From Schizochytrium sp. TIO01 (lineage: Eukaryota; Protista; Bigyra: Labyrinthulomycetes): 64,000 bases of DNA. The notes under the pieces are model-generated. The model had not been told where the DNA came from. It searched no databases and saw only the letters and a list, made by a program, of their open reading frames with translations. Location: NCBI GenBank assembly GCA_004764695.1, contig SMSO01000025.1, positions 2,914,001 through 2,978,000 of the forward strand, written 5' to 3'. A program made the translations under genes and the position numbers. Shown one piece after another: positions 38,401 through 58,838 of this stretch. The stretch's first letter is position 1. Each line of letters opens with the position of its first letter.

Positions 38401-40107
38401 ATGGCGTCCGTAGATGTTGATGATAGTGATCGCCTCGACCGCGGCCTCCTCTCGAACTCCTCAAATGTAGGTGAAAATGAAGACGCCGACGCTCAGGAAA
38501 ACCTTGCCACAAAAAAGATCGACTTCTGGTCAGAGATGAAAGAGCTCAGTGTGCTCTCCCTCCCCGTCGCCCTCTCCACGCTCTGTCGTCTGGTTATTAT
38601 CAACACGGATACTGCCTTCCTTGGCCACCTTGGTACGAAGGAGCTCACTGCCGCCAGTTTCGGTAACACATGGAACCAGTTCCTTAGCAACATCGCCTTC
38701 GCACCCGGTTATGCGCTCAACTCTCTCGGTAGCCAGGCCATCGGTGCTGGCAACCCCAAGCTCGCTGGTGTCTGGCTCCAGCTCGCTATCTTTATCACCA
38801 CCATCATCTGTATCCCTGTTCTTGTCGGATACCTCTTCACCAAGCCGGTCATTGCCCTCATGGTCGACTCTGATGGCGTTCCTGAGCTCGCCCAGGAATT
38901 CAACCACGTTTCTATTCTTGTGCTTTGGCCTATGGTCATGTACATGATCATCCGTCAGTACTTCCAGTCCATGCAGATTGTCACCCCCGCAATGGTTGTC
39001 TCTGGACTCACTGTTGGTGTCAACTACCTCATGAACTACTTGTTCGTGCCCCTTGACGGACCTTTCCGCTGGGGCCTCAAGGGATCTCCCTTTGCTACCT
39101 TCATCTCCATGCTCTTCCAGATTGGCTGCTTCACCCTCTACACCATGGTCATTAAGGGTTACCACAAGCCGTACTGGGGTGGCTGGTCCTGGGACTTTCT
39201 TGAGAAGTCCCGTGTTGCACGCTTCTCCAAGATGGTCATCCCCATGGCTATTGGTATTGTGCTCGAGAACTCTGGTCTCCAGCTCATTTCCTTCTCCACT
39301 GGTCGCATCGGCACTAAGGACACCCGTGAGGCCCTTATTGCTGGTAATGCCATTCTCGCCAGTCTCTGGGGTGTCCTTTGGTCTCTCTACTGGGGCTGTG
39401 GTCTTGCTCTTCAGGTTCGTGTGGGTGCCTACCTTGGTCAGGGCAACGTGCACGGAGCTAAGCTCGTCGCCAAGATCTCGGTTGTGCTTGTTGTCATTAT
39501 TTGCTTTCTCGTTGGTCTTTTCACCTTCCTTTTCCGTGTTCAGATTGCCAAACTCTTCTCCAGTGACCCTGCTGTTATTGACGTTGTTGATGGTGCCATG
39601 TACGCACTGGTCATTGACTACTTCACTGCCTGCCTTGCTCTCTGTGGTGTCAACCTGCTCGAGGCAATGGCTCAGAACCGCATCCTCGCATTTACCCTTT
39701 CTGCTGGTATGTGGTGCGTCCAGGTCCCTTGCGCTCTTCTCTTTGCATACAAGGTCCCCTATTACAAGGAACACCCCGTCTCCGGTATCTGGATGGGCCA
39801 GGTCTGTGGTGAGGTCTTCAAGTTGACCATCCTCTGGACCTACATTGCACGTCTTGACTGGGATAAGATGTGCAGAGAAGCAAAGGAGCGCTCCGAGGCT
39901 GCCGAGGCAGCTACTACTGAGGCCGATGAGCAGCTGGAGCACCTTCTTGAGGAACATGACCCTGACTTTGAGCGTGAGTCCCAGGCCATCCCCATCGGCC
40001 GAGCTAACCACCTTGAGTCTGCCGAGACCATTGCCAACTCTATGCAGGCTGGTTCGATGAGTCCTTTTGTGGGTTCTCGTTCTCCCAAGTTTTTGCGCCA
40101 AATGTAA
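38401..40107 (+). CDS. MATE family (multidrug and toxic compound extrusion) transporter, 568 aa from first ATG
   Basis: DTAFLGHLGTKELTAASFG, LGSQAIGAGN, RQYFQSMQIV.P, RVGAYLGQGN; about 12 hydrophobic segments; the ORF-track start 38371 is TTG and the ATG is at 38401. Confidence 0.93.
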   Translation: MASVDVDDSDRLDRGLLSNSSNVGENEDADAQENLATKKIDFWSEMKELSVLSLPVALSTLCRLVIINTDTAFLGHLGTKELTAASFGNTWNQFLSNIAFAPGYALNSLGSQAIGAGNPKLAGVWLQLAIFITTIICIPVLVGYLFTKPVIALMVDSDGVPELAQEFNHVSILVLWPMVMYMIIRQYFQSMQIVTPAMVVSGLTVGVNYLMNYLFVPLDGPFRWGLKGSPFATFISMLFQIGCFTLYTMVIKGYHKPYWGGWSWDFLEKSRVARFSKMVIPMAIGIVLENSGLQLISFSTGRIGTKDTREALIAGNAILASLWGVLWSLYWGCGLALQVRVGAYLGQGNVHGAKLVAKISVVLVVIICFLVGLFTFLFRVQIAKLFSSDPAVIDVVDGAMYALVIDYFTACLALCGVNLLEAMAQNRILAFTLSAGMWCVQVPCALLFAYKVPYYKEHPVSGIWMGQVCGEVFKLTILWTYIARLDWDKMCREAKERSEAAEAATTEADEQLEHLLEEHDPDFERESQAIPIGRANHLESAETIANSMQAGSMSPFVGSRSPKFLRQM

Positions 40108-41508
40108 ACTGAGTTAGAGTGAACGAGTAAGCTGTATCTACAGCAGTAATACACATACCCCCAATACAACTCGCAATGCGTTTCTAGTCAGCCTAGTTAA
40201 CAAACAACAAGACACCGGTCCGGCGTCTCTACGATTGTCACTGGCAAGCTTTTTAATGTCTAGCTATTCGTGAGCATCATAATATTCTTTTTTTCTCTTG
40301 TCAACCTCGCTTGCATTCCTTTTAAGATTGGTTTACCTTTGTTCTTTAGTTTAGTCGCTCAATGTCCACCGTTTGCTTTTGTTGGCTTCTGTTTTACTTT
40401 TCCCCTTAAACTCATTCATCATTTATGTTTCCATAGTTCCTCACACGCGGCGGTCTTTCACTACCATAATATTATGTGAGAACATGTTTGCTTGGGCTTC
40501 GTCTGTTAGCTGAAGCACATCGAAGAATAGCCAAACGATCAAACTTGGAAAGGCAATAGAGAACAAAAACAGTTTTTGTTACGAATGTGCCACCAAGTGG
40601 AATTAATCCGCGACCCGCTTCGTACAGAACTGCATTGAGGTTATTTCTATCCTCATCAAATTCATCAAGCTTTATACTATACTATGCTATATATGTAATA
40701 AATCTTGGCGTCGGTGTATATAGCTCGTTCTACAGAATCCTATCTGCTGTATCTAAAAGAGGAACTATTCAAAGGTTGTGCTGAATCCTAAGAGCTGCTA
40801 CATACAAAAGTAGTGATTTTCAAATACGAAAGCTTCTTTCAGCCTTCTCCACGACCAGACTGTGCTTGAATATATATTAATTTTTCATGGTAACTACATC
40901 TTGTGGCCCACGACTTTAATACTTTTCAACCTCGCAGCGTGTGCATCACAAATAATTCTTCTACAGCGTTTATTTTTGGAGTCTCTCTTTGAGCTACAAT
41001 TAGTTCTGGACGTCCAGGATTTATAGTTGTTTACAAACTGAAAGTCAAAGTTTTAAAGCGTACTATGAATATTGTGAGAGGTAGGACTTACATAATGTCA
41101 CTATGGTTACTGTAGACTAAGGATTAATATCGTGCACGATACCTCTCAACGGTCACCAGGTCATTAAGTGTATGGATGATTCTTATATGAGGCTTTGTAA
41201 GCCTGCTTCGAGTTTACACCATCGCCTTCACGTGCTTGCCAACCAGTGAGACGCGATATTCGAGCACCACAGGTTGCTTGCTCTCAGACGAGCAGGCAAG
41301 ATATTAATTTTTCGTCAAAGGTGGACGCGGCACACACATGTTCAGACTCTAGGTTTGCTTTGGTAGGCAAACTCTAAACCTTCGTTGTCAGCTTCGAGAT
41401 TCTGCTTGACTAGCTTGTGCTGTGAGTTTCGAGCCTCGTAGCCACACCAGCGTAGAGTTATTAAGTAGTTTGGTCGTCGCGACGGCGAACTCGACAGGAG
41501 AAAGCTTC

Positions 41509-44448
41509 ATGCCTAAATCAGACAATGTTCAAGCGAAGTCACCAGAACCTTTATTTCTGATTACTTATCGAGAAAATCAGGACCGAAACACCGCCTACTC
41601 CCTCTCAGGTATTCGATCATTAGATTTACAGGAGGTTTTTGTAAAGTACTGCCGCTACGGGGCTCTTGAAAGTCATCCAGCTTGGCTTTCTGGGCCCAAG
41701 TTTGGACGTCTTTTGCAGGATGCGCATCTTCATGACATGCTTGGTGATCGAATAGACACGATTCTAACAACATATGTTGAAAACGATGACCTCAAAATGT
41801 CATTCACGGACCTGTTGCGTGCCCTTGGGCTCGTTGCAACTCTGGCCTACCCTGAAGCCCCAAGTTTTTCTGAGGCTGTGGAACACCTTTTACAAGAGCA
41901 TATTCTATGTCTTATTCAATCCGGCGACTTTGATAACCATGACACGGCAGCACCAACCCTAGTAAATGAAGATGATGGCACTACGCTTAATCAGGACGAT
42001 GAAATAACACCAACCTCAATGGCTCAGCACAAAGGAGAAGACTTGGAACACTCATCTACGTCAGTCTTAATGCATGCGGTATTTAAGGGACCACAAGAAG
42101 CTCCCATTCAATCTTGCCTTGATGAAGACTCTTCTCAAGATGAGCACTCCCATATGTCGCATGCATCCAATTCGGAGTTCTTTCAAATATCTCCAGGGAG
42201 AGATTCATCAAGTCTTGTTCACTCATGCATATATTCACACGGGAGCTCAGATGTATCTAATGGAGACCAAGAGAACTCTGATAACCAGATTCTTGTGCAA
42301 AATTCATGTTCTGCTTCTGTCTACTCTTCACAAGATGAAACCGAAGTCGATAGCGTGAATTGCGCATTAAGTGTTACCCCAAGCTTATGTAGTAGTGGCA
42401 TGGACTCATCTACAACTGCTGGAACTCCAGGACAGTCAATTGGAACAGACGCCCTTCCTTTAGACCCGTCAGAGTGCCTTCGAGGTGATGCTGGTCCTCA
42501 AATAGTCAACTTAGATGTGAAACAAGTTAATCTCTTGCGGGATATCTTTCATCAATACACACCTCATTGGTGTACTGCGGATGGAAAAAACATAGCATCT
42601 AAACGTTGCTTGCGGAACCCTGGGATGGAGTTTGCAGTGCATACAAGCAAAACGGTTAAAGCTCGAAAAAGACCGCGATTTATGTGGAGTACAACCATGT
42701 GCTTTGGAGGTTTCCTAAGTTTTGTGCAAGATTTCCAAATTGCATGTGCAAAGAGCGAGCATGTGATGCAGTCTTTTGTTGCGGCACTGGGAACGCGTCC
42801 TCTGCAAATTCGAAGCCACAAGGGGCTTGACTTCAGTGCATTCGTGCATGCTGCCACGGGGCTTGCTGCATTGGAAGCAAAGTCACGAGCACAACGCACC
42901 TTCATCCCTTTTGGCCTTGCTGTCCGCACGCTGATAGAAAAATGTGAGCGCCTATACATTGCAAATCGATGCATTTCTCCTGGTGTTTGTGTTTCCTGTA
43001 TCGAGCTTAACCATCGAGGCAAAGCTGATACTCGCTGGATGCCTCAGATTTGCGCTGAGGACGCTGCTACGTTGGCACTGCTTGACAAAGTTCAAGATCC
43101 TCTACAAACCATCTTTGCGCATTATTGTGACCATTCCTCGATTGGGAATATTAGTATAGATCCGTGTCGAGGAGGTCAGTGTGGAGGACCGCAGCCCCTA
43201 TTACCGGAATGCGCCTTTTGGGCATTCTGTCGAGATTTTGAGGTAGGTCCTCGCTTTCTCAACCGTGCGCAACTGTGCTCAATCTTTCAGCAGATGGTCT
43301 TCACGTCTCGAAGCCACAGAAAACAAGTTCTCTCGTTGCAAGAATCGCAAGGCGAGATATCTCCACGCCATAAGAACGCTCATGCTCACGAGCATGCCGA
43401 TGACGAAGTCGCCCTTGATACAATCTACAGTACATCGACGACTTCTCTCGCTGATGCATGCATAGCTAGCTCTGGTGCCAAAGACATCGTCTCTGCCGGA
43501 ATCAGCTATCCTGAATTCCTTGGTGTTCTGCTGTATGCTGCCATCAAAGGTCTGTCAAAGTATCCTTATGATCACCTTGCCTCCTCTACTCACGAAAAGG
43601 TGGCTCTCTTCCTGCAAAGACTCCAGATCTCACCATCCTTTTGCAAAATCCTCGGTCATCGAGCAAGCCTCAACCTCGGCACCCCAAAGTCCAAGCAAAA
43701 CCGCTGCCAAACTGCCAGTACACACCACGGCAATAACGGACCCCATACAGCAACTTCTTGTCCTCCATATTCCCGACGTTCACCGAGTACAGTAGGCGAA
43801 ACAGAATCCAAAGTCCCTTCACCTCCCAGACCTCCACGGCAGGATCAGCTGCAGCAACAGTCATCTGTGGCGGTGCATAGGGCCTCAGATAGGCCTCGCA
43901 GGCAATCAGTGGGCTCGATCTCAATTATATCGGGTCCGATAGAAGGCGTTGCGTTTAATTGCTTTGAAGGCATTTCTGTGTGCTCAAAGTACTCAGATAC
44001 ATCGTCAACAGCGTCGTCGGAGTGTTCGGTAGCACCAGTCTCCCAGGCTGAACGGCGTCGGCATCTGCAAGCAGAATACGACCTCGCCCTACGCCGCTCG
44101 CAATCTCAACAGCGCTCGCGCAAGCTCCAACAAAACGCGAGGTCCTCAGCGCAGACATCACTATCTTCGCATGGGCCAAAAGAAGCTTCCACAGCAAGAA
44201 AAGATCTCAGGAGTGTTAATTTGAGAGCAAAGCCACCAAAGGCAGAACCAATTAGGTCCTTGTTTGCGCCTCGTAATAGCGCGGAAGCCGTACGTAGAAG
44301 GACGGCGTCTCGAGGAGTTGTGAATAAACTCCCTACAACGACAAGGAAATCTGAGAACGTTTCTAATACTCTTGGACTCCTTGGCGAGTCGGAGATTTCT
44401 GACGAGGGCCTAACTCTTGAAGAGAAAATACAACACGCATTTCAGTGA
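41509..44448 (+). CDS. Hypothetical 979-aa protein with three p25alpha/TPPP-like (EF-hand-like) helical repeats and disordered Ser/Pro/Arg-rich linkers and tail
   Basis: Long open frame (first ATG 41509). Repeats LQEVFVKYC..LSGPKFGRLLQDA..MSFTDLLRALGLVA, LRDIFHQY..MCFGGFLSFVQDF..LDFSAFVHA, and LQTIFAHYC..FWAFCRDF..ISYPEFLGVL. The family assignment is by eye. Confidence 0.75.
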   Translation: MPKSDNVQAKSPEPLFLITYRENQDRNTAYSLSGIRSLDLQEVFVKYCRYGALESHPAWLSGPKFGRLLQDAHLHDMLGDRIDTILTTYVENDDLKMSFTDLLRALGLVATLAYPEAPSFSEAVEHLLQEHILCLIQSGDFDNHDTAAPTLVNEDDGTTLNQDDEITPTSMAQHKGEDLEHSSTSVLMHAVFKGPQEAPIQSCLDEDSSQDEHSHMSHASNSEFFQISPGRDSSSLVHSCIYSHGSSDVSNGDQENSDNQILVQNSCSASVYSSQDETEVDSVNCALSVTPSLCSSGMDSSTTAGTPGQSIGTDALPLDPSECLRGDAGPQIVNLDVKQVNLLRDIFHQYTPHWCTADGKNIASKRCLRNPGMEFAVHTSKTVKARKRPRFMWSTTMCFGGFLSFVQDFQIACAKSEHVMQSFVAALGTRPLQIRSHKGLDFSAFVHAATGLAALEAKSRAQRTFIPFGLAVRTLIEKCERLYIANRCISPGVCVSCIELNHRGKADTRWMPQICAEDAATLALLDKVQDPLQTIFAHYCDHSSIGNISIDPCRGGQCGGPQPLLPECAFWAFCRDFEVGPRFLNRAQLCSIFQQMVFTSRSHRKQVLSLQESQGEISPRHKNAHAHEHADDEVALDTIYSTSTTSLADACIASSGAKDIVSAGISYPEFLGVLLYAAIKGLSKYPYDHLASSTHEKVALFLQRLQISPSFCKILGHRASLNLGTPKSKQNRCQTASTHHGNNGPHTATSCPPYSRRSPSTVGETESKVPSPPRPPRQDQLQQQSSVAVHRASDRPRRQSVGSISIISGPIEGVAFNCFEGISVCSKYSDTSSTASSECSVAPVSQAERRRHLQAEYDLALRRSQSQQRSRKLQQNARSSAQTSLSSHGPKEASTARKDLRSVNLRAKPPKAEPIRSLFAPRNSAEAVRRRTASRGVVNKLPTTTRKSENVSNTLGLLGESEISDEGLTLEEKIQHAFQ

Positions 44449-44613: not shown

Positions 44614-45330
44614 ATGAGTCTTCGGGCAGAGTTTGAGGCGCGCCGCCAAGAGCTTTTGGAGCTTGAGAAGAAACTTAAGCGCAACGAGGATGAGGCATTG
44701 GCACTCCTTGAAGTTCTCAACTCGCCTGGGCCAGATGGATCTGCACCTGTGGGTCTTACCGGCAACCTTGTTGACGAAGAGGGATTTCCACGTGCAGATA
44801 TTGATATCCCGACTATTCGTAAGCATAGACATCGTCTGGCGATCCTTAAGACTGATCGCAAAGCACTAGAAAGAGATATTGAAGAGAAGCTTCATGAGCT
44901 ACATGAAGCCCAACGCAATCTCCCTGATGATGAGGAGGATGAAGATCAGAAGGAAAGCGCTAGGAATGAATCACAGGCCCGCACAGCCTTAGTAGAGCCT
45001 GCCACGCGGGTCCACTTGGGAAGTGAGAGTGGACTTGGTGATGATCTTGTTCCCTTGGCTCTCGTGAACCAAGTCTTTGACGGCTCGCCAGCCCAAGAGG
45101 CAGGCCTTGAAGAAGGCGACCGTATTGTACAATTTGGTGTTGTTCAATATGTTGCTGGAAGCTCGTATCCTAAGCCAGACCTTGGAGCTTTCGCAGCAGA
45201 AGCCAGCAGCCACTTTGAGCAGCCAATCAGTGTCCGTGCACTCCGTGGCGAAACAGTTGTAGAGTTGGAACTTACACCGCGTCGTTGGGGAGGTCAGGGC
45301 GTACTGGGCTGCCACATTATCCCGATTTGA
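44614..45330 (+). CDS. PSMD9: 26S proteasome assembly chaperone p27/Nas2 (Nas2_N + PDZ)
   Basis: VGLTGNLVDEEGFPRADIDI..IRKHRHRL...D; PDZ VNQVFDGSPAQEAGL; C-terminal LTPRRWGGQGVLGCHI. Confidence 0.95.
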   Translation: MSLRAEFEARRQELLELEKKLKRNEDEALALLEVLNSPGPDGSAPVGLTGNLVDEEGFPRADIDIPTIRKHRHRLAILKTDRKALERDIEEKLHELHEAQRNLPDDEEDEDQKESARNESQARTALVEPATRVHLGSESGLGDDLVPLALVNQVFDGSPAQEAGLEEGDRIVQFGVVQYVAGSSYPKPDLGAFAAEASSHFEQPISVRALRGETVVELELTPRRWGGQGVLGCHIIPI

Positions 45331-45839: not shown

Positions 45840-47415
45840 TGCTGACGCGTCGCTATCAATGAAACCGGAGTCGAGGCCCAACAGTCGCAGGAAGTGATTG
45901 ATGAACACAGACGATTGATGATTCTATTATATTTTGATGGACAATCTAGCTCGCTCCAAACATTGTACGAAAAGGAACAGCATTTTGAGAACACACATAC
46001 AACTTATTAATGGTAGTAGTTAAATGTGTTCCAATCCTATAGTGCAAAGATTGAAGCAAAGTTGACAAGTACAAAACCTTCATGAGATTTACAAAATAAA
46101 TCAACAAACAAATCCATCTCCAAAGGTGAAAACCGCTCTATCCATTAGAAGAGCACCTCCCATGTCTATTGAAGCAGACTGCGACAGTCTTTCAAGTGTC
46201 TTAACCGCTGAAGATATCTCTGAGAAGCAAACCAAGAATGCATTTCCTTTGTAACCTACTATCTAGGTACGTGCAAACTATCTAAGATTACCTGAAAGCT
46301 GATGGGGCTTCTGCCCTTTATATCTTCGTAGATAATAGTATTGCAGGAGACTACGAGTCTCATTCGAAATTACTAGGAGATGTAAAAGGTGGATTCTTGG
46401 CTCTCGTGCGACCGTACGCATGTCCTTCCCTTTGCGGAATTAATATAATTTGATAAACCAACCGAATACATAATAATTCTGCGCTAGTTCAAGTTCTCGC
46501 TCCCTAGGACAGCTTCCCTACTGCTTGTCAAAATCTACATCGCCTGCGAATTCTCAAGTCCTTTGCGTGTCCTCCCTCGAAAGTGCCATGTTTGACAAGA
46601 CGAAGCTCGCCACCCCAGAATACTCTTCGATTCTATACTTATTATTATACAAACTCTATCTAGTGTATCCTTGTTGACTGATTCGCCGACCCTCTCTGAA
46701 ATAATCTAGGTGTGTTCTCCAATAATAATATGTAATTCACTCCAGTGTGTATGTGAGGGACCCCACTGGCAAGGAGGCGGCCAATATGAAAAAGTTTCCA
46801 CTATGATGCCTCCGCTGTAACCCAGTCAACGTTTACAGCCTCTCAAGCTCTGGTTGAGGATCTTGAGGCTTTTCTTGGGGCCGTTTAAGAACTCTTTTCG
46901 AATCCCCCCCGGCTTCACTATGATATAGCGCATCTTCATATCCAATTCGAGCGCCTTCGAGGTGCAAAGTCCTTCTTTCTGCGAGGTTGTTTATAGTTTT
47001 TTTTGGCTTTTTTTAAAATTTTATCGTTAGCACTTAAATACCAGTTAATAGGCCTTCCCATCGAAATGATTCTTTTTATTTAATGATGAACTGTTAGATA
47101 TTGTAATGTTTTATGATAGTAAAGACACACATAAAATAAAATAGACGAGAATAATAAGATGAATCAATGCGAAGCCAAGTCCAAACCCACTTTCAGGCCG
47201 CTCAATCGGTCGCCCGCTCAAGCTTCCCTCGCTGGAGGCAAGGTCGGTCAGGCTCCGCAGCTTCGTTGGGATTTAGGATTCTTTCCACGCCGGTCGCTGG
47301 GACTGTATCCAGGGCTTGTATCTACAAGAGTCGAGCGTGGGATACCCTCGCCAGCGAGCTGATTTAGAAACAGATATTGGTGCTGTAAAGAGCGTCGTGA
47401 AAAAGGACTGTGAAA

Positions 47416-48291
47416 ATGGCTGCCTTTGCGGATGATGAGGATGAGTATGCCGAAGTGACGGATGAGGAGAAATTCGCCATCGCATCTCAGATTCTCCTTC
47501 AGTCGCCACCTGGCCAGATCAAGGAGGTGCTCAAGGACCTCAAGCACCTTTGCTCTGACGAGATTTTGACCGACGAGGCTGTCGCTGGGGTGTTTCATCA
47601 ATACAACAATACGATGCAGCAGGTCATTGGCCCCATTATTTGTGACGAGGCTACTGAAATTGAAGATCAGGTTTATATTGATCCTGCAGCGCAAACCTCT
47701 GTTCGTGTAGACCCTCTTCACCAGAAGGTCGAAGACGCCGATGCCTCCGCAGATTTCCCTTTGCCGGAATTCCCTGCAGACTTGCAGGAATACCGTGAGG
47801 CGATCGAGGCTGCCATGAACGGCTACATCTCGAAGCAGTTTGTCCCTGGCACCACCACGCTCAGCGTTGTCTGTGGAGCCACTGATTCAGAGCTTTTGGT
47901 AATCCTTTCAGGTGAAAAGATCAACCTCAAGAACTACTGGTCTGGACGCTGGCGCTCGCGCTTTATCGTTAGTCTCGAGGAAAAGTGTTTGTATGGATGG
48001 GTCAAGATCAACTGCCACACCTTCGAGGATGGCAACGTGCAGCTTAGTACCGAGAAGAACGTCGATGATGAAGCTCTTTCCTTTGATGACCCTGAGTCCC
48101 TTGGTGCTGCAGTTACTGACACAATCTCTACGATTGAGTCCAACGTCCAAGAATCTCTTGAAGATATGTACGTTAACATGAGCCAGGAGGCCTTCAAGGA
48201 TATGCGCCGTGCCTTGCCCATTACTCGGCAGAAGATGGACTGGAGTGGTGCTCAGATGCAACTCGCCAAGGGCTTTGGCAAATCAAAGTAA
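47416..48291 (+). CDS. CAPZA: F-actin capping protein subunit alpha
   Basis: LLQSPPGQIKEVLKDL, NYWSGRWRS, KINCHTFEDGNVQL, FKDMRRALPITRQKMDW; ATG at 47416. Confidence 0.96.
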   Translation: MAAFADDEDEYAEVTDEEKFAIASQILLQSPPGQIKEVLKDLKHLCSDEILTDEAVAGVFHQYNNTMQQVIGPIICDEATEIEDQVYIDPAAQTSVRVDPLHQKVEDADASADFPLPEFPADLQEYREAIEAAMNGYISKQFVPGTTTLSVVCGATDSELLVILSGEKINLKNYWSGRWRSRFIVSLEEKCLYGWVKINCHTFEDGNVQLSTEKNVDDEALSFDDPESLGAAVTDTISTIESNVQESLEDMYVNMSQEAFKDMRRALPITRQKMDWSGAQMQLAKGFGKSK

Positions 48292-48875: not shown

Positions 48876-49859
48876 CTAACTATGGTGCTCCTTGTAGTAA
48901 GGAATAACAAGTTGCTCAATGACATCCCATACCCCAGGCAACACATACGCAGCATTGTTGGTATCGTGACCCTTCTTATAAACACCAGTTTCAAGCAAAA
49001 CGCTGCGAAATGGCTCACCAGTATTGTTTGCACCTGCTACATCGGCATCTGGGTTATCACCAATCATGAAGATACGCTGCATGGGCTGTCCATTCTGATT
49101 CTCCAAAAGTTTTCTAGCGTAGTTAAAGGTAACAGCATGCGGTTTACCAAATCGCCCAACCTGAAGCTCTGTACCTCCTGTACTTTTTCGAAACAAATTG
49201 GCTAGTGTCTCAAGAAAGGCTCCCTGTGCAAGGCGTGGATGCGGGTATGCTGATGCGTATATGAAGTCCTCATTCGAGTTAAAAATAGGCACGACCTGGG
49301 TGCGGTGCGTTGGATCGTCTGCAGGATTGTTTAGTGCCATCCGGATCGGGTCACGACCCAAGAGAATGTCTAGGCAAACCTGGACCTCAACGTGCCAATC
49401 CATCGGGTCGTGCATGACCAAGAGAGCTTCGACGGGATCGTTTGCAAACTTATCCTCTTCCGAGTCAGGGGCAGCCTCGCGAAAGGAGTACAAATCCGGA
49501 TGCTGGGAGTGGAATTTCTGCGGCGTAGTCATTTTGGTAAAACCATACTCGCGAGCTACATCAACTTCTTGGCGGCAACCAAGAATCATCACGCGGCGAT
49601 CATGGAATTCAGGCACTAGGCTGCGCATTGGGCTGTGAGCCAGAACGACTTGGGAAGCGTCAACAGGGATTTCAAGCCTCTCCGAAAGAGTTGCAGCACG
49701 ATCCCTCTCAAAATGACCTCCACCATTTGTCAAGAACACAAAAGGCACACCCATATCTCGCAAGGTTTTCACGGCCTCGCGAGCACCCGGGAGAACACGT
49801 TTGCCACGAACCAAGACACCATCGATGTCGAAGCACACGCCCACACTCGACCTTAACAT
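48876..49859 (-). CDS. HAD-superfamily subfamily IIA hydrolase, HDHD5/CECR5-like, 327 aa
   Basis: Motif I FDIDGVL, motif II FLTNGGG, GKP, motif IV MIGDNPDADVAGAN; first ATG at 49859. Confidence 0.92.
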   Translation of the reverse strand: MLRSSVGVCFDIDGVLVRGKRVLPGAREAVKTLRDMGVPFVFLTNGGGHFERDRAATLSERLEIPVDASQVVLAHSPMRSLVPEFHDRRVMILGCRQEVDVAREYGFTKMTTPQKFHSQHPDLYSFREAAPDSEEDKFANDPVEALLVMHDPMDWHVEVQVCLDILLGRDPIRMALNNPADDPTHRTQVVPIFNSNEDFIYASAYPHPRLAQGAFLETLANLFRKSTGGTELQVGRFGKPHAVTFNYARKLLENQNGQPMQRIFMIGDNPDADVAGANNTGEPFRSVLLETGVYKKGHDTNNAAYVLPGVWDVIEQLVIPYYKEHHS

Positions 49860-50657
49860 TTTGTTTGCACTACGCTTGAGGTTGGCACTAACTATAAAAT
49901 CACCGTCTTCAAGCACCGAATGGACCTCTAGTCCTTCACTCGTCTTAGCTGCAATCCCCACCAAATCTCAACACTTGATTGTACGGTTTTGCAGCAACTC
50001 AGCATGGCAATGTTGTGTGCTCTGAGAAATTCAACGACGCTCAGCTCAACAAGACGCTAGTAGTACTATCTAATATTTTGACTAGGTAAATAGAACAATA
50101 CACATAGAATTCGGTCACTCGAAATATAAGATGATGACCTTGAGTTTTAAAGCACTTGGAAACGTTTGCTGTCTTGTCAGGCCAACCTTCTGGCAGCAAA
50201 TTCAAGTGTAGATCGCAGTCGTCAGCAAGAAATAAACTGCTAAATCAATTCTTCCAGATTTTTGCCGTAACATATTTTCCAGGTTCTTGGTAGACAGCGT
50301 GATCTCAGACCTGACGAATTTAGCCATCAGGTGCTGTAGCATAATCTTCTATTTACAGATTCCTGTCCTGCGTCGCAAAATGATCGACTTCGGAAAAGCC
50401 TTTTTTCATATCGGCATTCCTGACTATGCATGTGACTTTGTCTATTCATTCAATAAATTAGTAAGTTTTATTCCCTTCAATCATTCCATTCATTCCATTC
50501 AATTGATCACTCGCCAATAAAAACAACATTAAAACCAAATCAAATTATATCTCAGCACGCCAAGGCTGAGAACGGATCTCGAAGTGGAGTAGCTAAAGCT
50601 AAGCCACAGAACCCTACGAAGCAAGTTTGGTGCTCGCTCCTCCCTCCCACTAGTGCC

Positions 50658-52169
50658 ATGGACGTGCAGGATGCCATATCCACTCTAGTGCGGCGGCGCG
50701 GTGAGATGTTTAGTGGCACGGATCCAACCGGCGATGGTATGGGCTTACTCGGCTCCGGTCCAGAGAACAGCGACTGGCGCAACCGTCGCATGAAGCTTAA
50801 GCTTGGTGCGGAGTACGCTGACATGGCCACTCTTGCAAACGCGGCTGCTGCTAGAGACGCCTCGAGAGCTCACTTAAAAAGCAAGATAAAGGCTTCACAG
50901 AACATCGCAGAAACCACGAAATCTGAAGCCCAGGTTGCAGCAATTACTGACTCCGGGAGCACAGAAGCAGTTGGTGGCAGTTCTAAAGACTTGGATGATA
51001 AGAACAGTGTTGGCCATGAGGCTAAGTTGCAGCTTGTGCTTGCAAATGAAACGAAACCAGGATCAGCGAAACGCAAGTTGGACGATAGATTACGCAGACT
51101 TGGCGCTGCAGACCTTGTAGAGGAGGAATCCAAGGCGATGAGATCCAGGAGAAAAGCTCCAGAACCAATTCGGCCGAAATGGCATGCTCCATGGAAATTA
51201 CACAAGGTTTTGCCAGGACATTTGGGTTGGGTTCGCTGTGTGTCAGTGGACCCATCGAATAAATTCTTCTTCACGGGATCGGCAGATCGTACTATTGTAT
51301 GCTGGGACCTTGCAAGCGGAGTTCGGAAAGTCACGCTCACGGCACACTCGCACGGTGTGCGGGGACTTGCCAGCAGCGAAAGACACCCGTATCTCTTCAG
51401 TGTTGGTGAGGATAAGACTGTGAAGTGCTGGGATCTCGAGACAAACCGTGTCATTCGAGAATATCATGGACACCTCCAGGCCGTGCACTCAGTAGCACTG
51501 CACCCAACACTTGACGTATTAGTTACAGGAAGTCGCGATGCCTCAGCAAGAGTTTGGGACATGCGCTCGCGGAAGGAAGTCCATCTACTCACAGGGCACG
51601 AGGATAGCGTAGAATCACTTATAGTTCAGGGTTCCGACCCACAGATTATCACGGGATCTATGGATAAGACCATCAAGCTTTGGGATCTCGCAGCAGGCAA
51701 GGTTATGACCACACTCACCAATCATAAGAAGGGCGTACGTGCGCTCGCGCGTAACCCTAATGAGTTTTCGTTTGCCTCAGGTGCAGCCGACTGCATTAAG
51801 AAATGGCAATGCATGGATGGGCGGTTTATGCTTAATATGAAGGGCCACGACTCAATTGTCAATGCACTATCTGTGAATAACGATGATGTACTCTTTTCTG
51901 GCGCCCAGGATGGTACTATGTGCTTCTGGGACTGGTCTAGCGGACATTGTTTTCAGACTTTGCGAACTACGCCTCAACCAGGTTCTCTGGACAGCGAGGC
52001 TTGTGTTTTGGCATCTGCCTTTGACATTACCGGTTCTCGCCTTATTACTTGTGAGGCAGATAAGAGTGTTAAGATTTGGAAACAAGATCGGGAAGCAACT
52101 GAAGAGAGTTTCCCCTTGTCATGGGATCGAGATGCAGCAGCTAAAGCTCTCCTTGATGATCGGTATTAA
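50658..52169 (+). CDS. PLRG1: Pleiotropic regulator 1 / Prp46 (WD40, NineTeen spliceosome complex)
   Basis: [68 protein letters not shown]. Confidence 0.96.
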
Positions 52170-53232
52170 AAAAGGCGAGACGATCTGTTCTATTACGAGT
52201 CGCAGTGCTATGCGAGGGCTTTTCCTTCCTTTTGTGTCTTCTTTCTGCTAGTTTGCACTAGTTCAATATTACCAAAAGCCAAAATGCGTCTTGTTGAGAA
52301 TGGCAATAAAAAGAATGAAGCGATGAGCAAATTACGTTATAATTTCTGAAACCAAAGAATGGATAGAGTTCCCTTGAAAGCCTGAAGATACTGCTTTATG
52401 CAAGGAGTGGAAATTTGTTTTTACTACTTCAACTTCAAATTAAGATGAACGATGACTTTCTCAGTTAAATTTTGGTACTAGCTTTTGAATGAAAGATGAG
52501 AAACTCGGACATTCTCGTACAGATCAGAGTAAAGCTTATTTGATAGAAACTTGACTGATGTAAATGTGTAGGGTTTTAATATCCTGAATCAAAAAGCATT
52601 GATTTGAAACGCTGGGCCCTAAATAATGCACGCTGTGCTGTTTGAAGTTAAGACTTACAAATACTACTACTAATTTTTAATTCTTTTCATTGTTACTTTA
52701 ATTAAGTGCAAATGATTCCTATTGCTTTACTAGAATTCCCTAAAGGATGTGCTAAATAATGGAAATGTAGCATATCGTTCTCTCTCATTCACAGAAGATT
52801 TTATTTATTTATTTTCCCAAAGGAGTGTGAAATGATGTTCTGCCAAACAAATGTAACTATCACTCGGTTTTAATCTTGCCTTCTCAGGCGCCAATAATGA
52901 AGGCAACGGCATTGGATACTGATGTGTTTAAAAAATAAACTGCAAATTGCAGCGAAGTGACTTGATACAACATTATGACGTCAGCCATTGCCCAAGATCA
53001 GGCAAATACTAAACAAACAATAAAAAATAAAAACAATAAAAAGACAAGGTTTTCACACAACTCATCACAAATGCTTCTCAAGGGGCATTTCGTGCGAGTG
53101 CTATGGATTTCCGTCGACCCGTCCGCACAATGGTTCACATGCTTGTCTATGAGGCCACAATAGCTTAAGTTTACTGTCACAAAATATTAGTTCAAGACGC
53201 AATACTAAAGAAAGTCGAAAAGTAGCGAACAT

Positions 53233-55887
53233 TTAAATCTCGTATTCTTTGATCTCCCACGAGCCGCCGAGGTTTGGTGTCACCTCAATTAACTTATGCA
53301 AGGGTACCTTGATCTTCATGGCCTCCTCCACAGGAGCGCCAAGAAAGTAAGCTAAGAGAACCTGGATGCAGCTTACGTGTGATACAATTAAACACGGTGC
53401 AGTTTGCTGCTCCACCTCAATCAATACTGGCTCGAGGCGCGTCACCAGATCAAGGTAGGATTCTCCACCAGGAAAGCGATGTGTATATGGGTGTCTTTTC
53501 CATGATTCGTAGAATTCTGGGTGCAACTTTTGGATAGCATCCATTGACAAACCGCCAAGCTCACCCTTATTCAAGGGGTTAAGCATAGGGCAAAGTTCAA
53601 CAACGGTCGACTCATCCAACTTCGACGTGGCGATATCTGCGGTTTGCTGAGCACGAGGCAAAGTTGAGCTAAGCAACTTCAAGACAGCACCGCGCTGGCG
53701 ACGACCATCAGCACGTCGGACTTCACGACGACGGTCTGAGCTAAGAAGGCCAGAAGAAATTCCATCGGCATCAATATCACGAAGGCTCTGAAGGTTACTC
53801 ATAGACGAAAACGCACGGCCCAAAGAGTTCTCATGAACACCCTCACCGGCCTCCTCCTCCACAAGAGCCTCGGCATCATCCGCGTCAAGATCCTCATCAT
53901 GGCGCACCCAAACAGCAGTCTCCAGCCAACTGGCAAGTCGTTCAGCAAATTCGTGGCCCAGGTGGCTAAGTTTAGAGGCCTTTGATTCTGTAGATGGGTC
54001 TAGGAAATCAAACTCCGCTGGCCACTGTTTCAAATTTGAGATGGCGGAGTCCTCGGCAAGTCCAGCACGGACAAAGTAGATCGGACGCAAGCCCACATGA
54101 AGTGATAACATGTATGGCAAAATAGAACGAGCCAAACGTCCATAAATTTTGTTGGCTAGCATCTTACTGGACATGTTATAAATCTTAATGTAGGATACGT
54201 CTTCGTCAACTGGTTCGTATGCCTTTTCATATGCTGCAATGCGCGCGCGCAAATCACCAAGTGCCTTTTCCTCATCCATACCCTCAAAGTCTGGTGAGTT
54301 GCGCACCTTGGAAAGCAAGTTCTCCATCAGCACCTCTTCGTCATCACAGATCACCTCAATGAAAACAACGCTCGCAATACCCTTGGCCTGTTCCACAATC
54401 CACCGACGACGAGCCCGAGTACTGTTAGTGGCATCGAAGATACCAACTGCTGTATTTTTAGATTTGCTAAGGTATGCTAAGAGGTCGCTCAAAGCGCGGT
54501 TCGCGGCTTCCTGACGGACACGAGACCCCTCCTCGTTTGAGGTCTCAAAAAAGTTGGCATTATCGTTGGACCCTTCCTGTTGGGAATCGTGGTCTGAGTC
54601 TGATTTTGCACGCCGCTCACGACGATATTTGCCAGCGTTGAAGATGCGTGCACGACTGTTACGCCAGCACAAGAACCGTTTCAACTTGCGGGCTGTGAAT
54701 GATTTACCGCGGGCAGGTAAGCCAACCATGACAACGACTAATTTACTGGCATCTTTGGTAAGGGCATCGCGCTCGTTCATAATCATAAGTGTACGGCTAC
54801 GCGTGGTTTCACGGCTACCATTGTAATATCTACTCTTATCTGTGTTTACAATTGCGGTAGCTGTGGAGGCAGATTGAACCACACCGAGAGTTGCTGCACC
54901 AGAGAATACAGGCCTCACCGGAAGACCACTAGAAGACCGTACGCGTGCCATAACGCTAGCACTGGAGGCGGGGCGGGGTGGGGGCACAAGAACATGCGGC
55001 ACAGCACTGTCCAAGCCACCTTCTGGATCTTCTTCAAGCAGAAGAGGACTTCCCTCCTCAAGAATCGTGCTCGCACAAGGAGAAAAGGTTGCTGTGGTAG
55101 ACCGCACAGACAAACCATCATCGGTTATATCAGAATGCGCGTCACTCTCGTGTCCTGTAAATACATTTTCTGCCATTCCACCTGCTTTGAAATTTCCCAA
55201 GGTACAGCTAAGAACGTGTTTCACTTTTTCCACACGCACGCAGACATCAACCCAGTCACGTTCGGTGTTCTTCACGTCGAAGACGTTAAACGCTTTATTG
55301 CCGCGACTACGGTTGACTTGACCAACAATTTTGATGCCAAGATCAACTTCCAGCAAAGAAGCAATCTCACCTAGCACACCGGGTACGTTTTCGTTAATGA
55401 TGCAGAGGCGTAGAGGGGCAGTGTCCTTATAAATTTGACCAGTTTGGGCATTGAAGGCGCCGAGGGAGACACTACGAACACCAGAAATCTTTTCAACTTC
55501 AGCAACCACTTCGATGGCTTGGTCATGGTCCACTTCAATATCCACTACTTGGAAAACAAGATGTCCACGCGCCTTGCATGTGTTACCTACGATGTTGATG
55601 CCGCATTGGCCAATGCGGGTCGTGATATGAGCAAGTAGACCAGCATGGTCTTCCTCAATAATACACAAACGTTGCACAGAAATGTGTGGGGATTCTTGAT
55701 GCGAAAGTCGTCTATGGATAGGAGCATCATATACCTGCGCAGAGAGGTGATTAAACTCTGGAGGGGGGGAGACTTTATAGCTACCATTCACGATGCTGCC
55801 GTCAACTGGTGTCGCGACCTTGGCCTCCTCAGAGTTCATGGTGAGTCGTGCCTCGGTCGCAGTAACCTTCGCTTCTGAGGAGTTCAT
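53233..55887 (-). CDS. 6-phosphofructo-2-kinase with tandem N-terminal ACT domains and a degenerate fructose-2,6-bisphosphatase domain
   Basis: Kinase motifs MVGLPARGKS, FNAGKYRR, IFDATNST..RR, FIEVICDD, SPDF; PGM-fold remnants FPGGESYLDLVTRLEPVLIEVE and IVSH; ACT repeats at ~55459-55674 and ~55195-55416; ATG at 55887 (alternative 55839). Confidence 0.93.
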   Translation of the reverse strand: MNSSEAKVTATEARLTMNSEEAKVATPVDGSIVNGSYKVSPPPEFNHLSAQVYDAPIHRRLSHQESPHISVQRLCIIEEDHAGLLAHITTRIGQCGINIVGNTCKARGHLVFQVVDIEVDHDQAIEVVAEVEKISGVRSVSLGAFNAQTGQIYKDTAPLRLCIINENVPGVLGEIASLLEVDLGIKIVGQVNRSRGNKAFNVFDVKNTERDWVDVCVRVEKVKHVLSCTLGNFKAGGMAENVFTGHESDAHSDITDDGLSVRSTTATFSPCASTILEEGSPLLLEEDPEGGLDSAVPHVLVPPPRPASSASVMARVRSSSGLPVRPVFSGAATLGVVQSASTATAIVNTDKSRYYNGSRETTRSRTLMIMNERDALTKDASKLVVVMVGLPARGKSFTARKLKRFLCWRNSRARIFNAGKYRRERRAKSDSDHDSQQEGSNDNANFFETSNEEGSRVRQEAANRALSDLLAYLSKSKNTAVGIFDATNSTRARRRWIVEQAKGIASVVFIEVICDDEEVLMENLLSKVRNSPDFEGMDEEKALGDLRARIAAYEKAYEPVDEDVSYIKIYNMSSKMLANKIYGRLARSILPYMLSLHVGLRPIYFVRAGLAEDSAISNLKQWPAEFDFLDPSTESKASKLSHLGHEFAERLASWLETAVWVRHDEDLDADDAEALVEEEAGEGVHENSLGRAFSSMSNLQSLRDIDADGISSGLLSSDRRREVRRADGRRQRGAVLKLLSSTLPRAQQTADIATSKLDESTVVELCPMLNPLNKGELGGLSMDAIQKLHPEFYESWKRHPYTHRFPGGESYLDLVTRLEPVLIEVEQQTAPCLIVSHVSCIQVLLAYFLGAPVEEAMKIKVPLHKLIEVTPNLGGSWEIKEYEI

Positions 55888-58838
55888 TGCAAGCCAACCA
55901 GTCAAGTCACAAAGTACTAGCGAATATATGACGCAACGAGGAGTCGAGTCTTATGTGCTGCGCGGAAGAGCCTTGCTTTTACAGCTGTGTGCTACTATCA
56001 GATTCCCAAACTTCAAACACGAATCTTCTTCTGACGCGCAATAACAACCGTCTTGAAGCTAGTCAAAGAATACCAGCAAGTTCCAGACGATAGATTAAAA
56101 CCTTGTGCCAGGTTTCCACAGAGGTCAGAACAACGGGTGAGCAAATTATGCCTTCGCAGTAGCCCTCGTCTGTTGCTTCCCAAGTTTTTCCTCCACCGAC
56201 GTGCGATGCTGTGATGACGGACAAAGAGCGACGCTAACTATGTGAAACCCCAGTTCAAAGGCGAAGATGCAGAGGATGACAGCAAGACTGGCACCGCCGC
56301 GCTTTGGGTTTTAGCGCTGTCAGGTCAAACAAAACAAAGGCAGACTCCTTCAGGCTGCCCAAGTTGCAAAGAATGCTGCGCTGACGAAGAACAACAGAAA
56401 ACAGAGAAACAAATAGACGATGGACCCGCGATGGCCTGGCGAGCGGCGCGGGAGCTGACTAGAGCCGACTTAAGCTTCAAAAAGGCGATCAGCTTCGGTG
56501 TCAAGGCACTCGGCTCGTCGCAAGCGAGCCTTCGTTTTCAATGCGCCCCTTCTGCTCTGCCGTAGCTCTCCGCGAGGCAGGCAGCAGATCGATCTATCGA
56601 TTAAATGATTGAATGATTGATCAATGACTGAAAAGAAAGGAATGAATAAATGAATGCAACTCACGAAAGTATTTCTTACCCAATTTAAACCTTTTACCTA
56701 AGACCCCTATAGCGCCTCTTACCAACTAGTAATTTGAATTTCCATTTTCTTGTTTTTTTTTTTTCTCTTTTTTCTCTCCTTAAATAAAAACCAAAAACAA
56801 GAGTTATAATTTTTAGTTTTTATTTTTGTTTGAAGCAAATTTGAATTTTCAATCAAAGTTTAATTGAAAACGTTTTCCGCTTTTCTCTATAGGTACCCAC
56901 TTACTTCGCGCGCTTAGGCAGAAAGCTAGCACTGATTGACGAACTTTCATCGCTCATGAATGAATGAATATTCATCGCTCACGATAGTGTTAGTTAGTTC
57001 TTTATCAAAGCCAAAAGAGTCGAGAAGGAGAAGATGCTCTCTGAGGTCGATCTGCTTTCTCACGTGCAGGACTGTCACTCACTCACTCACTCGCGTGCTC
57101 CAACGTTCTCGCAACGATGCCCAAACGGTCCTCCTTTATCCTGGGCGCCTCCACTTCGCCTGTGAGCAGTGGCTTGGCTTGCCTCGGCTTGGCTTGGCTT
57201 GGCTAGACTTGAAGAAGCAGGAGTCTGCTGTTCTCTCCTGATTCTTCGTCGCTGGGATTTTGTCTTTTTCTTGTCATTTCATTTCTTTACAAATGATCGT
57301 GTGTCTCTTTCTCTCTTTCTTTCTCTCTTTCTTTCTTTCTTTCTCTCTTTCTTTCTCTCTTTCCTTCTCTCTTTCTCTCTTTCCTTCTTTGACGGATAGA
57401 CAGACATGCAAAGAAAGAACACCTCAATGAAGGAATGAATGCAGGAAAGAGAGAGAAAGCCTCGAAGTTCTCCCTGCATCTTCTCCTTCCCGAGGCGAAG
57501 CCGTCCCCGTCTTTCGAGAGGATGATCTTTCGGGCATCGAAATGCCGTCGCATACGATGCGGATGCGCTGCTCCCCCATGGACGTCGCCCGCAGACGGCC
57601 AGGAACCACGCCAGCTCCAGCGCTGCGGCTTCGCTACGACTGCGAGATAGAGAGAGAGAGATGATAAGATGATAGACACGATAGGATGGGCCTAGGAGGT
57701 GCTAGGCACCTACCTACCTATATACTGCCTATATACCGCCTATCTATCTCATGGATTGCCAATTCGATTCTTTTACCATCTCTTCATATTTGACCGCCAT
57801 TGCAGACAAAACAAAACAAACAGCAGGAGGCAGGCATCCACGCGGCGGCTTTGCGTCACAGATGCCTTGCTTGCTTTGCATCGTAGAGAGGGTCCCATTT
57901 GCTCTGCTGTCCACAGAACTGGCCTCACTCACGGCATCGGCATTGATTGCAAAACCCAAAGTCTTTCACTGTTGTGCGCTTATTTTCGTGGCTCTTTCTC
58001 TTTCATTCCTCTCTTCTCTTCTCTTCTCTTCTCTTTCCAATAGATTCATTCCTTTGGTGTTCTGTTCTTTGCCGATGTACCAAGCCTCCGCCTACTACTT
58101 CTCCTAGCTGAAGCCTACTACCCGTTTGAGGGCTAAGTGCCCCATAGTGACTGCTAGGCGCATTGCCACGAGGTGCTACGCGGAAAGAAGGCATTGGTTA
58201 TTTGCTTTGTGAAGAAGATGCCATGACTCCGGTGATCGATTGGCGTCTAATTGTTTCTTGAAGGCAGACCAGTGCACCGAAACCATGGCTTTTAAGCTCG
58301 AGTTTAGGACGCAAACTTCAAGGCCAATGACATCTCGTTTTTCTGAAGTCGGAGAAGCAGAGAGAAACCAACGACTGAGGAACGAATATTTTGATTTCGT
58401 TCGTTGTTTTTAAAAAAAATAAAAATTAAAAAGCTTGTACTGGTTTTAATTAAAAAACAAAAACAACAATAATTATATTCTAATTAATTTAGAAACATCA
58501 TCACATCATTCCATTAAGGCATCAGTGCATTTTGTGAAAAGCTATTTCTTGGTCTTTTAACTTGTATTATTTCTATCTGTATATGCCACAGAGAGTTCAC
58601 CACCTTCGTTCGTCCTCCCTTTCTCTGGCCAGAGCATGGGCAAAGCAAAGATGGTAAGGAAGGTGCCGCGACCGCTGCTTGCCGCTCGATCTCTTGAGGT
58701 TTGACCTTTTGCGATAGCGCAGAAAGAATTGGCCTCCTCCCTCGAATTACATGCACTCACTCGAGTGAGTTCCTCACTACCTTTCTCTTCCTTTGCTGCT
58801 TATTTTTCCTTCTTTCCCTTTCAGGTTCCTCCAAAGGA

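Follow-up and report, generated by a model that had tools for sequence, protein, structure and literature searches.

An N-terminal pair of ACT domains on a predicted kinase-only 6-phosphofructo-2-kinase of Schizochytrium sp. TIO01: a candidate metabolite sensor on fructose 2,6-bisphosphate synthesis

The window, which is the whole 64,000-nucleotide stretch of Schizochytrium sp. TIO01 DNA analyzed here (contig SMSO01000025.1, positions 2,914,001 to 2,978,000 of the forward strand), contained a minus-strand gene in which two ACT domains precede the kinase of a 6-phosphofructo-2-kinase (PFK-2) within a single open reading frame (ORF). Of the allosteric signals known to act on eukaryotic PFK-1 and FBPase-1, fructose 2,6-bisphosphate (Fru-2,6-P2) is the strongest, and its level is controlled through protein phosphorylation in animals, yeast, and plants. 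To our knowledge, every characterized enzyme that makes Fru-2,6-P2 is controlled via phosphorylation, protein partners, or substrate levels. The ACT-ACT-PFK-2 protein is apparently a regulatory design on this central metabolic signal that is undescribed in the literature, and its features point to, but do not prove, direct control of glycolysis by a small metabolite (e.g., an amino acid) that acts on this enzyme.

The initial annotation had proposed two ACT-like repeats ahead of the kinase, and both profile searches and fold prediction confirmed that two ACT domains precede the PFK-2 kinase in one ORF, an arrangement well outside what chance would produce. Three models of the ACT clan were tested in Pfam (PF01842, PF22629, and PF13291), with a cut-off of 27 bits. 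When the whole protein was used as the query, all three remained just below this cut-off (ACT, 25.5 bits); when region 61-262 was searched alone, ACT (31.8 bits), ACT_AHAS_ss (30.0 bits), and ACT_4 (28.0 bits) each exceeded it. The ACT profile was also matched by 17 of the 21 family members, with a best E of 1e-11 and scores of approximately 44 bits in relatives P0084 and P0088. The two repeats, designated ACT1 and ACT2, shared 38% identity (E 9e-14), and the peptides that had been quoted earlier were located in them, with RLCIIEEDHAGLL spanning residues 73-85 and RLCIINENVPGVL spanning residues 160-172 (residues are counted from the first ATG, at 55887). An AlphaFold2 model of residues 61-262, which was built on an alignment of 21 sequences, had a mean predicted local distance difference test score (pLDDT) of 82, with cores above 90, and consisted of a pair of beta-alpha-beta-beta-alpha-beta units with a short helix connecting them. 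The strands (E) and helices (H) of ACT1 were E71-79, H84-94, E98-107, E110-118, H121-132, and E137-142, and those of ACT2 were E159-166, H171-182, E187-195, E198-205, H212-220, and E225-230. Foldseek searches against the PDB returned ACT proteins with a probability of 1.00, including the tandem-ACT proteins 2nyi, 2f06, and 1u8s, Mycobacterium SerB2, and AHAS small subunits (E 1e-7 to 1e-5). A search of the ESM Atlas with the ACT pair yielded generic ACT clusters only, with scores of at most 0.82.

The resemblance of these repeats to the ACT domain of phosphoglycerate dehydrogenase (PGDH; SerA in Escherichia coli), which had been noticed from the letters alone, was upheld. The NCBIfam model PRK11790 (E. 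coli-type PGDH) was matched twice, over profile positions 336-401 of 410, which is the C-terminal regulatory part. A sequence search of the PDB with the ACT region retrieved PGDH chains only, with repeat 1 resembling residues 336-402 of E. coli SerA (phmmer, E 0.005) and repeat 2 resembling residues 329-394 of 27ws (E 0.009). In addition, one ACT unit was superposed by Foldseek on E. coli SerA (1sc6_B) with a root-mean-square deviation (rmsd) of 1.1 Å over 71 columns at 27% identity. An exhaustive phmmer search of 1.8 billion representatives with the ACT pair gave only 43 matches. Six longer matches that were not PFK-2 were scanned for domains, and five of these were C-terminal ACT domains of PGDH, whereas one was an ABC-transporter ATPase (P0106); most of the remaining non-PFK-2 matches were fragments of less than 140 amino acids that lay outside the domain scan. 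Cluster membership traced one PGDH to Amorphochlora. Elsewhere in the genome, the ACT pair matched only the C-terminal ACT domain of the organism's own PGDH (L009; 1468-2952, minus strand, G000 contig C34; 494 amino acids), which was 39% identical to ACT2 (E 1.3e-7). Its sequence, RRICIVNRNVPGMLG...NINI..., shares the N-x-N-x-P-G loop and the Asn of N-I-N with the window protein. These comparisons showed that the ACT domains are of PGDH-like ancestry.

In E. coli SerA, the bound serine contacts His344 and Asn346 in one subunit and Asn364' in the neighboring ACT domain. The ACT2 loop of the window protein was SerA-like (I-N165-E-N167-V-P-G-V-L), with I-N165-E-N167-V-P-G aligning to I-H344-E-N346-R-P-G of SerA, and G-I-N98-I-V of ACT1 aligned to G-V-N364-I-A. 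Asn167, the equivalent of SerA Asn346, was Asn in 20 of 21 relatives, and Asn98, the equivalent of Asn364', was Asn in 18 of the same 21. The equivalents of His344 were Asn165 in ACT2 and Glu78 in ACT1, and the organism's own PGDH also has Asn at this position; the equivalent of Asn364 in ACT2 was Lys186. In most relatives from beyond the thraustochytrid clade, the mirror half-sites (positions 78/80 of ACT1 and 186 of ACT2) carried N-x-N and Asn. Within that clade they were degenerate on both sides, as in the window protein, which has E-E-D together with Lys and in which the beta1-alpha1 loop of ACT1 reads E78-E79-D80-H81-A82-G83. Joint loss of the mirror half-sites is the pattern expected of two composite ACT1:ACT2 sites, one of which has been lost. 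These alignments suggest that a single SerA-like composite site has been conserved, and it is predicted to consist of N165 and N167 of ACT2 and N98 of ACT1.

The explanation that we favor as a whole, with a little more confidence than doubt, is a kinase-only PFK-2 that is regulated by a small amino acid at a SerA-type ACT pair. ACT1 and ACT2 would pair laterally in the manner of the ACT dimer in E. coli SerA, and the ACT2 loop (N165, N167, and P169-G170) would form one composite pocket with Asn98 of ACT1. This pocket would take a small amino acid as its ligand, L-serine or a close analog being the first guess, and an occupied pocket would alter kinase activity or oligomeric state, with an effect that may go either way. 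The synthesis of Fru-2,6-P2, and hence PFK-1/FBPase-1 flux, would then follow amino-acid status, and the removal of Fru-2,6-P2 would fall to the two ACT-less paralogs, in which the RHG, Glu, and His motifs are retained. Phosphorylation of the linker between the ACT pair and the kinase may operate alongside, or in place of, ligand sensing. Ligand sensing by the ACT pair appears plausible, and any connection with lipid accumulation, as raised in the initial annotation, is hypothetical. The broader proposition, in which serine or another amino acid would bind directly to the ACT sensor of a kinase-only PFK-2 and thraustochytrids and some uncultured marine eukaryotes would set their Fru-2,6-P2 level in this way, is more tentative, and we give it slightly less than an even chance.

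Several points weigh against regulation by an amino acid. The loss of both mirror half-sites together amounts to approximately one evolutionary event. The two-domain ACT model had a predicted template modeling score (pTM) of 0.54, and its superposition as a whole on tandem-ACT proteins gave rmsd values of 10-13 Å. Ligand specificity may differ from that for serine because the His344 equivalent is Asn. Furthermore, ACT domains bind non-amino-acid ligands too, and some are oligomerization modules only, and the long disordered linker offers no obvious route for allosteric coupling. A docking prediction for the ACT pair (61-240) and the kinase (365-612), which was run without a family alignment, scored 0.00 and was counted neither way.

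The full-length model (pLDDT 71; pTM 0.67) comprised a disordered segment (1-66), ACT1 (71-142), ACT2 (159-230), a second disordered segment (234-360), a helix (360-376), the kinase (382-600), and a phosphatase fold (603-884). The second disordered segment, which is the linker, contained the basic-Ser motif RVRSSSG (315-321), with the counterpart RVKSSSG in Hondaea, and the motif TRSRTL was located in the lead-in helix directly before the kinase core. The retention of these basic-Ser/Thr motifs favors an alternative in which the ACT pair serves as a structural or oligomerization module, or as a dock for a partner protein, and the kinase is controlled by phosphorylation of the linker, as animal PFKFB isoenzymes are through their N- and C-terminal tails. 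The decay of one of the two SerA-like sites in thraustochytrids and the degeneration of both ACT loops in the environmental relative P0093 point in the same direction. On the other hand, Asn167, Gly170, and Asn98 were near-invariant in a region with an identity of approximately 25-30%, which a pure scaffold does not explain, and we regard this alternative as unlikely.

A second alternative, which we consider rather improbable, is that the ACT pair senses a metabolite other than an amino acid, such as a glycolytic intermediate, an organic acid, or a nucleotide, and would provide carbon rather than nitrogen feedback. The Asn at the His344 position would fit such a sensor, as would the fold matches to 2nyi and 2f06, which are tandem-ACT proteins of unknown ligand, and ACT or ACT-like domains with other ligands are generally known. 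However, the nearest sequence relatives were the ACT domains of PGDH, including that of the organism's own enzyme with the same loop and the same Asn, and the ACT domain of E. coli SerA binds serine.

The kinase domain was intact, as the initial annotation had stated. The 6PF2K profile (PF01591) scored 211 bits against a cut-off of 27 (E 1.6e-62; residues 378-598, profile positions 9-221 of 223), and the similarity to the structures of PFKFB3 and PFKFB2 reached E 1e-61. All nucleotide and Fru-6-P motifs were present, including GLPARGKS (389-396, Walker A), FNAGKYRR (416-423), FDATNSTRARR (484-494), SPDF, and RIAAYEKAYE, and the motif columns were invariant across 40 relatives. The C-terminal half matched His_Phos_1 (PF00300) with 91 bits against a cut-off of 21.7 (E 7.7e-26; residues 719-881, profile positions 29-190 only of 194). 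In contrast to the kinase, this half had lost catalytic residues. The phospho-acceptor His was replaced by Ala608, with R607-A608-G609 (codons 54061-54069) lying on the RHG of PFKFB3, PFKFB2, and PFKFB4; alignment with PFKFB3 and PFKFB2 placed VRAGLAE opposite CRHGESE, and RPIYFVRAGLAE lay on RTIYLCRHGENE/RHGESE. The catalytic Glu was replaced by Pro771, with LNPLNKG (53563-53583) lying on LNEIDAG. Because the catalytic His and Glu are both replaced and the kinase motifs are intact, the protein is predicted to be a one-way Fru-2,6-P2 synthase, which should make Fru-2,6-P2 and should not hydrolyze it by the canonical mechanism. The two-way Fru-2,6-P2 switch that the title of the initial annotation implies had to be abandoned for the same two substitutions (RAG and LNP). 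A bifunctional PFK-2/FBPase-2 whose kinase-to-phosphatase ratio is set by the ACT pair would be in keeping with the confidently modeled His_Phos_1 fold (pLDDT 85-95 outside the insert), the second phosphatase His (H837 in IVSHVSC), and the RFPGGESY motif, all of which were retained. It is nevertheless very improbable, given both substitutions, which recurred in every ACT-bearing relative and in an ACT-less clade whose records name Phytophthora, Bolidomonas, Durusdinium, Amorphochlora, and several diatoms.

The minus-strand frame was uninterrupted over 53233..55905 (890 codons from a TTG in the ORF list of the window), and the first ATG gave a protein of 884 amino acids without a stop or frame change over 2.65 kb. 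A second in-frame ATG at 55839, 48 nt downstream of the first, corresponds to residue 17. Logan contigs from four separate studies were colinear with the window over 53000-56200 with zero joints, and the gene is therefore without an intron. The top database match, P0001, is an MMETSP0958 transcriptome peptide of Aurantiochytrium limacinum (taxid 87120) with a length of 868 amino acids. It was approximately 100% identical to the window protein from residue 17 (the second Met) to the end and carried ACT, 6PF2K, and His_Phos_1 on a single peptide. Because P0001 spans residues 17-884 and is derived from MMETSP, which is a transcriptome project, the ACT repeats are present in the mature message; the initial annotation had asked for confirmation of a single transcript. 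Contigs of 3.5-3.8 kb in three runs had a size that fits one mRNA, which is not proof, as the RNA origin of these runs is a guess. It is scarcely credible that the fusion is an artifact of assembly or gene modeling in which neighboring ACT-ACT and PFK-2 genes were read as one, since this reading has nothing in its favor but the long, poorly conserved linker and is contradicted by the uninterrupted frame, the colinear contigs, the spanning peptide, and the recurrence of this domain order in over 15 clusters that belong to different organisms.

The GC content was approximately 0.50 across the PFK-2 ORF and approximately 0.33-0.40 in its flanks. The contigs of one study were identical to the window over 53000-56200, and this study may be where the window sequence comes from. 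Those of the other three shared the same 11 single-base differences from the window and one 1-base deletion (53167, outside the coding sequence), and probably represent another strain or allele. The two ATGs are supplied by two look-alike N-terminal peptides, MNSSEAKVTATEARLT and MNSEEAKVATPVDG (MNSSEAKV and MNSEEAKV; 55792-55887, minus strand), and Tandem Repeats Finder called no repeat at the 5' end of the gene. The N-terminal tail (1-66) had no similarity to the N-terminus of the Hondaea protein and was unconserved.

The same architecture was found in Hondaea fermentalgiana (P0002, 76% identity), in Mucochytrium quahogii (P0005), in further MMETSP/JGI sequences (P0003, P0004, P0006, P0007, and P0120), and in environmental clades (P0008; P0087 and P0093; P0027, P0030, P0036, P0037, and P0086), with ACT-bearing members extending down to approximately 33% identity. 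The environmental sources were marine metagenomes, including surface water of Tara Oceans. Among the search matches, ACT was absent from animal, fungal, and plant PFK-2 relatives, of which the plant ones carried CBM20; this agrees with the earlier remark that the characterized animal, yeast, and plant enzymes do not have ACT domains. A full-text literature search found no description of a fusion between ACT and PFK-2. The novelty of the fusion holds with respect to the papers searched, but not for the architecture as such, which recurs elsewhere and is public under automatic names (a JGI entry is called 'predicted amino acid-binding ACT domain protein').

A maximum-likelihood tree was constructed from the kinase domain only, with the ACT columns left out, by a 'quick' method that did not infer the root. 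All 15 ACT-bearing proteins were located on one side of a branch (SH-aLRT 94), and this group was nested within a pseudo-phosphatase clade (support 99). The ACT-less members of that clade (P0009-P0029) shared R-(A/P/S)-G and LNPLDKG. Because the ACT-bearing group is nested in the pseudo-phosphatase clade, the pseudo-phosphatase state appears to be older than the ACT fusion. A single fusion, in an ancestor shared by thraustochytrids and some marine eukaryotes, would fit the kinase tree. Kinase-only 'PFK2/FBPase2' proteins look widespread in stramenopiles and neighboring lineages, and the bifunctional annotations of the ACT-less pseudo-phosphatase PFK-2s are probably wrong. In one environmental clade (P0027, P0030, P0036, P0037, and P0086), the C-terminal domain had decayed further, with LCVDE in place of RHGES and loss of the second His and of RFPGGESY, and both ACT loops kept N-x-N-x-P-G.

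The genome of Schizochytrium sp. TIO01 contained two further PFK-2 genes, L001 and L003, both of which lacked ACT and had RHG, SEI(H/D)AG, and the second His. L001 (811-2268, minus strand, G000 contig C31) encoded 485 amino acids with complete kinase and phosphatase motifs and is probably a canonical bifunctional PFK-2/FBPase-2. L003 (1069-3465, plus strand; G000 contig C36, approximately 2152633-2155029) encoded 798 amino acids with a long acidic insert. Its phosphatase motifs were kept (MRHGQSE, SEIDAG, and AHRAV) and its kinase motifs were altered (GKPARGKT, VDTVAVRQ for FNVGxYRR, and KLKYHDDEYE for RIxxYExxYE), and it may be a phosphatase-only counterpart of the kinase-only gene in the window. 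PFK-1 and FBPase-1 are the usual targets of Fru-2,6-P2. The genome encoded a class I FBPase and a single PFK-1 gene, whose one 824-amino-acid frame carries two PFK domains (L004/L005; G000 contig C31, 3918495-3920495, plus strand), and this PFK-1 is of the duplicated eukaryotic type. The PGDH had an N-terminal extension of approximately 70 residues that resembled an organelle presequence. In the thraustochytrid Oblongichytrium, cold induced a 'probable 6-phosphofructo-2-kinase' 7-fold, with the paralog not specified (PMC7698632).

The positions of the features of the PFK-2 gene and of its neighbors in the window are listed in Table 1. The neighbors are unrelated housekeeping genes, with no functional clustering with the PFK-2 gene. 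A functional link to glutamine synthetase (GS-B), the nearness of which had been mentioned in the initial annotation as perhaps coincidental, was rejected; at least seven unrelated ORFs lie in between, and the proximity gives no support because unrelated housekeeping genes intervene. A 1008-amino-acid ORF at 41422-44445 (plus strand) had no Pfam match at E 1e-5. A CT-rich low-complexity stretch at 57170-57480, with FLSF/KERK repeats in several frames and a strong AT skew, is probably an intergenic, microsatellite-like tract.

Table 1. Positions of the ACT-ACT-PFK-2 gene, its predicted parts, and neighboring genes in the window.
Feature	Position	Strand	Basis or remark
Whole coding sequence, 884 codons + stop, intronless	53233..55887	-	Uninterrupted ORF, colinear contigs, P0001 peptide
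N-terminal tail, residues 1-66, predicted disordered	55690..55887	-	pLDDT ~30, full-length model
ACT domain 1, residues 70-142	55462..55680	-	Pfam ACT + ACT_AHAS_ss, PDB phmmer to SerA, fold pLDDT ~90
ACT domain 2, residues 158-230	55198..55416	-	PDB phmmer to PGDH 27ws 329-394, likeness to PGDH L009, fold model
Ser/Thr/Pro-rich disordered linker, residues 234-360, ~125 residues	54808..55188	-	pLDDT 31-45
6-phosphofructo-2-kinase, lead-in helix 360-376 + core 378-600	54088..54810	-	Pfam 6PF2K, PFKFB structures, motifs
Pseudo-bisphosphatase, His_Phos_1 fold, residues 603-884	53236..54081	-	Pfam, PFKFB alignments, pLDDT
Disordered acidic insert in phosphatase half, residues 666-719	53731-53892	-	pLDDT profile
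WD40 beta-propeller protein	50658-52169	+	Neighbor
HAD hydrolase	48876-49964	-	Neighbor
F-actin capping protein alpha	47410-48291	+	Neighbor
Nas2-like proteasome chaperone	44614-45330	+	Neighbor
MATE transporter	38371-40107	+	Neighbor
Glutamine synthetase	31002-32057	+	Neighbor, ~21 kb away

If regulation by a bound amino acid is true, a metabolite-sensing ACT module on PFK-2 would represent a different mode of glycolytic control, and an ACT sensor copied from the organism's own PGDH would link the serine branch back to upper glycolysis in a closed loop. Aurantiochytrium is used in industry to produce lipid rich in docosahexaenoic acid, and how its carbon is divided among glycolysis, amino acids, and fatty acids is of practical interest as a target. 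The spread of pseudo-phosphatase PFK-2s also bears on the reading of 'PFK2/FBPase2' annotations in diatoms and oomycetes.

Compared with animal PFKFB1-4 (2axn, 5htk, and 1bif), the window protein has complete kinase motifs followed by His_Phos_1 in the same order. The animal enzymes, however, have an active phosphatase (RHGES and LNEIDAG), no ACT, and short phosphorylated tails, whereas the window PFK-2 has a dead phosphatase and carries a 230-residue ACT-ACT module and a 125-residue linker before the kinase. A division of labor among paralogs, with one domain dead in each, is found in yeast PFK26/PFK27 and in the trypanosomatid PFK-2/FBPase-2 isoenzymes. These resemble the window protein in having one dead domain and lineage-specific N-terminal extensions, but their extensions are unstructured or, in trypanosomatids, ankyrin, and their inactivating substitutions are different; the trypanosomatid isoenzymes were reportedly the subject of work by Chevalier et al. 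in 2005 (cited in PMC7729029). Plant F2KP also has a long N-terminal regulatory region on PFK-2 (PF00686, PF01591, and PF00300 in P0039-P0045), but it keeps RHGES and LDEINAG, and its added module is CBM20-like and carbohydrate-binding.

On the side of the sensor, the ACT domain of E. coli-type PGDH (SerA) was the best sequence match for each repeat and a close structural match, sharing the (I/H)-x-N-x-P-G-V-L loop and the Asn of G-(V/I)-N-I. SerA has one ACT per chain, which pairs across subunits, and a dehydrogenase partner, whereas the window PFK-2 has two ACT domains in one chain and a kinase partner, with Asn at the His344 position and one of the two symmetric sites decayed. Other tandem-ACT modules, including those of SerB2 (5jlp), the AHAS small subunit, aspartate kinase, the GcvR-like protein 1u8s, and 2nyi, likewise consist of two consecutive ACT folds with a regulatory role at the N- or C-terminus, and they gave the top Foldseek matches. 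They differ from the window pair in their low identity (9-20%) and in a domain orientation that was not superposable (10-13 Å), and none of them is fused to PFK-2.

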